A stretch of 64,000 bases of DNA from the NCBI GenBank assembly GCA_009859145.1, contig VRVR01000024.1, positions 265,408 to 329,407 on the forward strand, in the 5' to 3' direction. A model generated the notes under the pieces. That model saw nothing but the letters and a program-made list of their open reading frames with translations, had not been told where the DNA came from and did no database searches. Of the stretch, positions 9,433 through 10,019 are shown in pieces. The first letter of the stretch is position 1. Each line of letters opens with the position of its first letter. This DNA is from Andalucia godoyi And28. Its lineage: Eukaryota > Protista > Jakobida. Position numbers and translations under genes: made by a program.

Positions 9433-9545
9433 CCTACATTATACACTGAACATGCATATATCTACGAATAGACATGATGTATATTCAGTCTTGCATCCCG
9501 TTTCCGGGAAGGGGATAGGCCCCAACACGCCTCACGGCGTTCTTC
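9431..9545 (-). ncRNA. Candidate omegaRNA scaffold at the element right end
   Basis: Minus-strand hairpins: ACGCC-GTGA-GGCGT (9527-9540), GGGG-CCTAT-CCCC (9511-9523), TCCCG-GAAA-CGGGA (9496-9509), and a 17-bp interrupted stem with a TTCG loop (9447-9487). GCCTAT can pair with the terminal GTAGGC. The region overlaps the end of the nuclease ORF, as TnpB/Fanzor omegaRNAs do. Confidence 0.65.
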
Positions 9546-10019
9546 AGATAAATGCTCCGCGCTCCGTTCCCAATCTCGATCAATCGGTGAGCCACTTTCT
9601 CAGCGTGACACGTTGTTCCTGAGAAGGGTGCATTTTGAGTCTGACGGCCCTAGCAGCAGGCGCTTTCGTGTCCTCAGTTGCAGCGATTGATGCAGCTGGA
9701 GATACGAGAGGAAGAGGCGGTAGGCGTAGTGACACGTGGTCTCTTAGGAGGTCTGCGGGACCTAGGAGGCCCTGTATCGAGCGGCGTAGGCGTAGGCGAA
9801 TGCGTCATCCTAGCGCACTCACGCCCATATTTGAATTAATAAAGCGGAATCAAACGAATGATAGAATAGATGGCTACGGATGCTGCGTTAAAGAGTGTCG
9901 AAAATGCGGAGCCTGTGTCACAGGCTGTGAAACAAACGTGCTAGTGTCGGCCAGCATTGACCGTGTCTGTTTATGGATACTTCCCTTCCGTATGCATGAC
10001 AATGACGTGTTATTATTCA
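9433..10019 (-). mobile_element. Non-autonomous, internally deleted Fanzor2/TnpB (IS607-like OMEGA) element, 587 bp
   Basis: Flanked by a 3-nt direct repeat (ACG at 9430-9432 and 10020-10022). Excision restores GAC ACC GTC AAG TAC (DTVKY) of the ankyrin gene. Contains TnpB/Fanzor N-terminal and RuvC-III motifs and a structured 3' end. Confidence 0.85.
9485..9808 (-). pseudogene. Fanzor/TnpB nuclease remnant (N-terminus fused to RuvC-III, central part deleted, frameshifted)
   Basis: ATG at 9808 gives MTHSPTPTPLDTGPPRSRRPPKRPRV. In a shifted frame, [20 protein letters not shown] starts at 9651. IDRDW lies at 9584-9570, then one extra G, then [27 protein letters not shown] at 9568-9485. Confidence 0.85.

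Follow-up and report, generated by a model that had tools for sequence, protein, structure and literature searches.

What interrupts a small ankyrin-repeat gene of the jakobid Andalucia godoyi And28, and from what kind of element does the interrupting DNA descend? The question is raised by a segment of 587 bp (positions 9433-10019, minus strand) within a 64,000-nucleotide stretch of contig VRVR01000024.1, which as a whole is referred to below as the window. With a probability of roughly 0.88, the segment can be considered a dead, internally deleted Fanzor2-type element inserted in the coding sequence of the gene. Fanzor2 is the eukaryotic and viral branch of TnpB, the RNA-guided nuclease of the IS607/IS605-like OMEGA elements; an origin of this kind had been proposed in a first-pass annotation made from the nucleotide sequence alone.

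The site of insertion can be reconstructed to the nucleotide. The minus-strand open reading frame (ORF) 10363->10013 ends in ...NRGQLDTVE followed by TAA TAA, and the ORF 9446->9183, on the same strand, includes ...VKYLTSLNTVDLESKNMHGGTVLG...; the two are halves of one ankyrin protein, split by the insertion. The 5' part of the gene proper occupies 10020-10363 (codons 1-115, ending in ...NRGQLDTV, with GTG at 10363 as the listed start), the 3' part 9183-9429 (KYLTSLNTVDLESKNMHGGTVLG...AAAHHS plus stop), and the joined protein is recognized by the Pfam models Ank_2 (E=8e-6) and Ank (E=4e-4). Two identical ACG triplets bracket the 587 bp, one at 9430-9432, flanking the 3' or right end of the element, the other at 10020-10022, flanking its 5' or left end and reading CGT on the coding strand, and the exact boundary of the element is ambiguous inside the flanking triplet. 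Removal of 590 bp, i.e., the element and one ACG, gives NRGQLDTVKYL, with a DTVKYL junction like that of the homologues and with no insertion or deletion; the empty site is accordingly predicted to read ...GACACCGTCAAGTAC.... The earlier statement that excision of 587 bp restores the gene was correct as to the length of the segment and its flanks, and off by one triplet as to the restoration, as removal of 587 bp leaves DTVVKYL with one surplus Val. A BLASTP search of 5.8 billion proteins with the restored sequence listed 20 homologues of 155-203 aa, 39-46% identical over about 92% of its length. In all ten that were aligned (40-48% identity in the alignment) the motif NRGQLDTV(K/R)(L/F)LI is unbroken, V115 and L118 being invariant, and this continuity of the homologues across DTV/KY, which no GT-AG pair reproduces, bears out the insertion into an ankyrin gene.

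The last point concerns an explanation that the locus itself invites, namely that the segment is a spliceosomal intron, ordinary or of the transposon-derived 'introner' type, and that the ankyrin gene is still functional. The segment indeed lies in the orientation of the host gene, both halves of which are still open, and one in-frame pair, GT(10021)...AG(9426), is present. The length is also within the published range: in the compact, intron-poor genome of A. godoyi, of about 20 Mb, introns are all GT..AG and 55-756 bp long, with a mean of 151 bp (PMC7050145). Nevertheless, this explanation is very improbable. Splicing at GT(10021)/AG(9426) removes V115-K116, of which V115 is invariant in the homologues; exact restoration requires non-splice boundaries at the 3-nt repeat; coding remnants of a TnpB protein lie inside the segment; and the gene is missing from the predicted proteome and lacks an ATG in frame ahead of the conserved N-terminal region. 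When the in-frame GT-AG pairs near the junctions were enumerated, 0 of 13 gave NRGQLDTVKYL.

As to the fate of the host gene, no window-encoded protein was present among the matches of the ankyrin search, and in the absence of such a self-match the gene is therefore taken to be absent from the predicted proteome. No in-frame ATG was found 5' of the conserved N-terminal region of the ORF. Its first in-frame Met is codon 47, and an ATG at about 10406 is off by one base (10361-10410, minus strand), perhaps a second lesion in a gene undergoing decay. Both the absence from the predicted proteome and the lack of an in-frame ATG are consistent with a pseudogene. The consequence of the insertion itself would be a truncated ankyrin protein, with TAA TAA directly after ...DTVE.

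The descent of the inserted DNA is revealed by the pieces of protein that it still encodes. The 20-aa N-terminal peptide, the IDRDW peptide and the 10-aa C-terminal peptide, which the first-pass annotation had ascribed to TnpB/Fanzor proteins, were all found on the minus strand, in three frames, at 9648-9589, 9584-9570 and 9568-9539, respectively. They are parts of an N-terminal remnant of a Fanzor2-like protein at 9589-9732, of a GSPIDRDW peptide at 9570-9593 with the RuvC-III 'RD' motif, in which the codon for the catalytic Asp is retained, and of a C-terminal remnant of 27 aa at 9485-9568 including its stop codon (9485-9487). The sole Pfam family matched by the N-terminal peptide was PF12323 (HTH_OrfB_IS605), weakly and below the cut-off (E=0.1-0.16), and an NCBIfam search of the element peptides gave nothing relevant. 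Another query was a chimeric peptide: composed of the window N-terminus, the zinc ribbon of a second A. godoyi protein (P0001, discussed below) and the frameshift-corrected window C-terminus, it scored 30.4-31.3 bits (E=4.5e-7 at 30.4 bits) against PF07282 (Cas12f1-like TNB, formerly OrfB_Zn_ribbon), above the cut-off of 26.3; P0001 alone scored 18.3 bits (E=0.0026), below it. Among structures in the PDB the chimeric peptide matched several TnpB/Cas12f-type chains, including mimivirus L79, other matches of similar score being von Willebrand factor.

The family became apparent in a large search, in which 1.84 billion representative proteins were scanned by hmmsearch, with no word index, using a profile of P0001 and the window N-terminal peptide. 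Besides P0001, 26 proteins were retrieved at E<=1e-3; most are of 400-680 aa and match both near the N-terminus and at the extreme C-terminus. Pfam analysis of 23 of them identified PF07282 in every one, PF12323 in 22 and PF01385 in 16; all those tested are accordingly TnpB/Fanzor proteins. The consensus of the relatives, KIRxYPTxEQxxxLxxWxG ... ALDPGVRTF ... FETQxMV ... EAYTSKTCGxCGxIHxxLGGSKVFxCPxC....DRDxNGARNILLK, mirrors the pieces of the relic, and it is to the KIRxYPTxEQxxxLxxW start that the N-terminal remnant aligns. When the window was translated in six frames and scanned with a profile of the full-length relatives, the N-terminal peptide ranked first among 2,187 pieces and was the only significant match (E=1.1e-5); by tblastn, independent full-length relatives matched window positions 9550-9714 with a best E=2e-4. 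The coding remnants are assigned on these grounds to the TnpB/Fanzor superfamily.

The closest near-full-length relative, P0090, was found with the chimeric peptide and is encoded on a contig of 1,286 bp from Logan SRR28211851 (L004). Its gene (nt 3-1275) includes ...GKAMRVKMYPTMSQRTTLRRWMGAARWLYN..., ALDPGVRTF and LLPKFETSQMV; residues 4-53 of its first ORF align to the N-terminal remnant of the window. The gene falls into two frames that overlap, nt 3-854 and nt 670-1275; L004 is possibly a pseudogene or affected by an error of assembly. Its RuvC-III motif has DGD in place of DRD. The contig has 58.7% G+C against 49.3% in the window, and it is probably from a different organism. At the DNA level, L004 1181-1270 and window 9592-9502 are 80% identical over 91 nt (E=4e-17). 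The single gap in this alignment, GATTGG-AA versus GATTGGGAA, is located at a GGG run (9569-9571, minus strand), where L004 has GG and where the extra nucleotide breaks the frame of the relic, the RD motif being read in the frame that precedes it and the C-terminal remnant in the frame that follows. The extra G postulated in the first-pass annotation is thus directly supported, because the sole gap relative to the in-frame L004 falls at this run; moreover, its correction raises the score of the relic against the family profile from 24.5 to 38.0 bits.

These comparisons also dispose of the view that two short peptides resemble TnpB motifs by coincidence. Each motif is indeed short, and the Pfam match of the HTH peptide is as weak as stated above; yet homology at the DNA level (E=4e-17) to a gene whose TnpB-family status Pfam confirms, the first place of the window peptide in the six-frame scan and the assignment of 23/23 tested library matches to the TnpB family refute a chance resemblance, to which hardly any probability can be given.

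Comparison with L004 defines as well what has been lost. The homology of the N-terminal part stops at 9589 and that of the C-terminal part starts at 9592/9593, which places a deletion junction at 9589-9593 on the minus strand; a short GCTC overlap at this junction suggests, at the level of sequence, a microhomology-mediated deletion. The window copy lacks about 1.0 kb (L004 nt ~162-1180), comprising WED/REC, RuvC-I, RuvC-II and the zinc ribbon, and with it the RuvC-I Asp and RuvC-II Glu; the proposed loss of the nuclease core is thereby confirmed. What remains of the nuclease gene, about 25% of it, amounts to ~25-50 codons at its start and ~35 at its end; the non-coding sequence retained measures about 210 bp on the 5' side and 52 bp on the 3' side. 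As the C-terminus is broken by the 1-nt insertion, the RD motif being readable only when the extra G is corrected, the nuclease cannot be made from this copy, which is a non-functional relic of a member of the TnpB/Fanzor family.

Within that family the relatives point to the Fanzor2 type. A profile of the 23 nearest full-length matches recognized PDB entry 9b0l_P, the mimivirus 'TnpB-like protein L79' (Fanzor2), with 235 bits (E=1.4e-68), as against ~76 bits for ISDra2 TnpB, and the L004 protein gave 86 bits with L79 versus 44 bits with TnpB. Neither of the two structure searches, with the relatives' profile or with L004, returned a molecule named Fanzor among its matches, Fanzor1 structures being presumably present in the library searched. 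A fungus, Allomyces arbusculus, is the source of one relative; of the others that were looked up, most are known only from environmental or run assemblies, and one more is also present at NCBI. One of the relatives, P0033, from a TARA scaffold (L003), is located directly downstream of a gene with MerR-type helix-turn-helix and Resolvase domains (7280-7969), i.e., in the IS607 layout. The best match to L79 and this neighbouring IS607-type serine recombinase are in agreement with the link to Fanzor2 and IS607 that had been drawn at the outset.

A different source would be a bacterial IS605/IS607 TnpB element that arrived, by horizontal transfer or as contamination, together with a bacterial-like ankyrin gene. 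The closest homologues of that gene are bacterial or metagenomic: those of the 20 listed that carry a taxon name are bacterial, with one named (Terriglobia), the others are mostly metagenomic, and no eukaryote-attributed or EukProt match to the restored protein occurs among the 20, most of which lack a taxon name. Because its best homologues are bacterial or metagenomic, the ankyrin gene may itself have been acquired horizontally. For the element, on the other hand, a bacterial origin is extremely improbable, since its closest full-length relatives match L79 far better than bacterial TnpB, one of them is from the fungus A. arbusculus, and two more relics occupy other loci. Contamination is further contradicted by the surroundings, with neighbours of eukaryotic type, among them a TPT transporter and a C2-domain protein of 1443 aa, and exact EukProt entries for five of the six ATG-initiated ORF products tested.

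The existence of related copies, another expectation of the first-pass annotation, is documented by these two relics. The first large protein search returned a single relative, the 82-aa P0001, which is ANDGO_01483 of A. godoyi itself (EukProt EP00762_Andalucia_godoyi) and is encoded outside this window. It retains the TnpB zinc-ribbon signature, its deletion being smaller than that of the window copy, and a stretch of 12 aa in it is an out-of-frame translation from the extra G, in the same shifted frame as in the window copy. A frameshift common to two loci yet absent in L004 would imply propagation after inactivation. Moreover, the window sequence AAGTGGCTCACCGATTG is the product expected from a nested short-repeat deletion of a P0001-like copy. 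The element would thus have been defective already on its arrival at the ankyrin site; defective copies would have spread in trans, in the manner of miniature inverted-repeat transposable elements (MITEs), as suggested by the frameshift in common with ANDGO_01483 and the smaller deletion of the latter; and the window copy would then have been shortened by a further ~96 bp in a microhomology-mediated deletion. The tail of P0042, a metagenomic protein of 62 aa, resembles an out-of-frame 17-aa stretch of ANDGO_01483, which suggests, from the sequence, that an unrelated sample contains a relic with a similar frameshift. No relative was revealed when metagenome and viral contigs were scanned with P0001; the L004 protein, as a query on contigs, retrieved one fragment of 46% identity, of no help in defining the ends.

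The second relic of the family is present in the window itself, at 35078-35310 on the plus strand, and bears two internal deletions. It is located in a 748-bp gap (34616-35363) between the minus-strand ORFs 29729-34615 and 35364-39920, where the relatives' profile and several relatives match the plus strand at 35100-35250. Its N-terminal leader (35078-35143) is 80% identical to L004 23-88 (E=4e-11), and a mid fragment, AKDASCIYRLCLSADKLSSKI (35152-35202), is 75% identical to L004 742-792; KVLCCPSCKCQW (CCPSCKCQW) follows, and then a degenerate, frameshifted DRG/VNG motif. Comparison of the element with the window by BLASTN and tBLASTn found no other copies, the second relic having surfaced only with the profiles of the relatives. 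No end sequence common to the two window relics was detected, their 3'-end alignment being not above that of shuffled sequences. A match of 23 nt (E=0.22) between the left terminus of the first relic and the second relic on its reverse strand was judged to be due to chance.

The same copies bear on whether a full-length, possibly autonomous Fanzor2 was inserted in the ankyrin gene and decayed in place, never having been a mobile MITE-like derivative. Deletions and frameshifts are the usual fate of dead insertions, and the second relic of the window has a different deletion pattern, both of which would suit such a history. It is contradicted by P0001, which at another locus has the same +1 G frame, the in-frame L004 being without that G, and by the window sequence, which agrees with the product expected if a P0001-like copy underwent a second deletion nested in the first. 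Decay in place is hence regarded as unlikely. Of the initial description of the element as MITE-like with both ends kept, the internal deletion stands, while mobilization and the retention of the ends are deduced from the frameshift shared by two copies rather than from aligned termini.

The ends of the putative Fanzor2-type element give some indication of how it may have been inserted. Terminal inverted repeats (TIRs) are not significant in it, the best being an 8-mer equalled in 11% of shuffles, and neither is direct similarity between its two ends. Bacterial IS607 elements, whose serine recombinase makes its crossover at GG dinucleotides, have neither TIRs nor target-site duplications (TSDs), and some Fanzor2 genes have been captured by cut-and-paste transposons that have both (PMC10711439, PMC3627910). 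Because TIRs are absent, a recombinase-type insertion at a short core is favoured for the window copy; the core would be AC/CG, not GG. Alternatively, the identity of the ACG triplets could reflect a 3-bp target duplication.

In active TnpB and Fanzor2 elements the ωRNA (reRNA) scaffold overlaps both the 3' terminus of the gene and the right end of the element. The 3' ~157 nt retained in the window copy are accordingly where, by this analogy, an ωRNA scaffold and the right end would be expected to lie. The 3' ~160-220 nt of the element fold somewhat better than shuffled sequences (z -2.4 and -2.8), with a sub-terminal hairpin. The 3' non-coding or right-end region (9433-9484, minus strand) includes an imperfect 13-bp hairpin formed by 9445-9457 and 9477-9489, 12 nt from the end. 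A search of 9000-10500 against Rfam gave only sub-threshold noise.

Several points weigh against the interpretation of the segment as a deleted, once mobilized Fanzor2-type element. The assignment to Fanzor2 rests on the relatives, the relic being too short for phylogeny, and an intact Fanzor at close similarity was not found in the protein collections searched. A sharing of termini, the copy number and the microhomology model are conjectural, the sister copy being known here as a protein. In the first 210 bp on the 5' side, the non-coding or left-end region of the element (9809-10019, minus strand), there is no remnant of a transposase or serine recombinase and no other Pfam domain. The canonical GG crossover dinucleotide of IS607 is not found at both junctions, the identity of the flanks being ACG. 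Finally, the ωRNA is placed by position only, with z of -2.4 to -2.8 and no Rfam family.

Compared with described systems, the segment is most akin to Fanzor2 as known from mimivirus L79 (ISvMimi) and Naegleria lovaniensis NlovFz2 (Bao & Jurka 2013, PMC3627910; Saito 2023, PMC10432273; Yoon 2023, PMC10711439). Features in common are K/R-x-R-x-Y/H-P-x-x-x-Q...L-x-x-W at the N-terminus, YTSKTCGxCG as the zinc ribbon, which is retained by the sister copy, and DRDxNGARNI at RuvC-III; L79 is the best structural relative of the family profile, one relative has the IS607 layout, and TIRs are lacking; the host, too, belongs to Discoba, the supergroup that also contains Naegleria. It differs from Fanzor2 in that only ~25% of the gene is left, without RuvC-I/II, the zinc ribbon or a serine recombinase, and from bacterial IS607 in the junction identity, ACG versus a GG crossover. 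Varied internal deletions at several loci, a disabling mutation common to copies and the retention of sequence beside both ends recall the non-autonomous TnpB/Fanzor derivatives, such as the CRe-1/2/3 deletion copies of Chlamydomonas and the TnpB-only elements of the IS1341 type (PMC3627910); most of the known cases, however, are Fanzor1 elements, located in Helitron or Mariner contexts and having defined ends. With introners and MITE insertions the segment shares the short non-autonomous form, the location in a coding exon, the sense orientation and the short flanking repeat; unlike introners, it has no canonical splice pair that regenerates the conserved protein, and the gene is outside the predicted proteome.

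Known carriers of Fanzor2 are giant viruses, molluscs, algae and, within Discoba, Naegleria (PMC10432273), and neither Andalucia nor any jakobid was found in the Fanzor papers and text supplements that were searched. The relics would thus add Jakobida, a deep-branching and gene-dense lineage, to the recorded hosts of Fanzor2/TnpB-type elements, and at least three independently deleted copies indicate that the family was once active there. The locus is also a clean gene disruption with an exactly reconstructable empty site, which should help to determine target preference when further copies have been aligned. In conceptual terms the advance is modest, since the copy is non-functional and other eukaryotes are already known to have relics and non-autonomous derivatives of Fanzor.

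It had further been concluded that the genome harbours an RNA-guided nuclease family. This is upheld for the past and not for the present, for which only dead relics, and no intact Fanzor, transposase or ωRNA, were found. Subtelomeric scaffolds of a transposon- or viral-like nature were omitted from the A. godoyi assembly (PMC7050145). It is conceivable, if rather doubtful, that an intact Fanzor2, with or without a recombinase, survives in them and that the deletion derivatives, keeping both ends and the 3' region that encodes the ωRNA, are still mobilized or maintained in trans, each supplying its own guide RNA to the common nuclease. If true, this would mean that a jakobid has an active OMEGA system in which satellite elements provide guides only.

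Some minor features of the locus remain to be mentioned. The window is gene-dense, with long ORFs free of interruption, and the element and its host gene share the minus-strand orientation. Fanzors typically have an N-terminal extension, and a 44-codon ORF of the element that begins with ATG (MTHSPTPTPLDTGPPRSRRPPKRPRV..., 9674-9808, minus strand), encodes PPKRPRV, similar to a nuclear localization signal, and is out of frame with the N-terminal remnant may, by inference, be such an extension in degenerate form. About 100 nt upstream of this ATG lies a near-perfect palindrome, AGCCTGTG-A-CACAGGCT (9910-9926), whose 9-mer CCTGTGACA is repeated at 34991-34999, 87 nt upstream of the coding remnant of the second relic; the palindrome could be a promoter or a binding site, or its recurrence could be due to chance (E=2.6).

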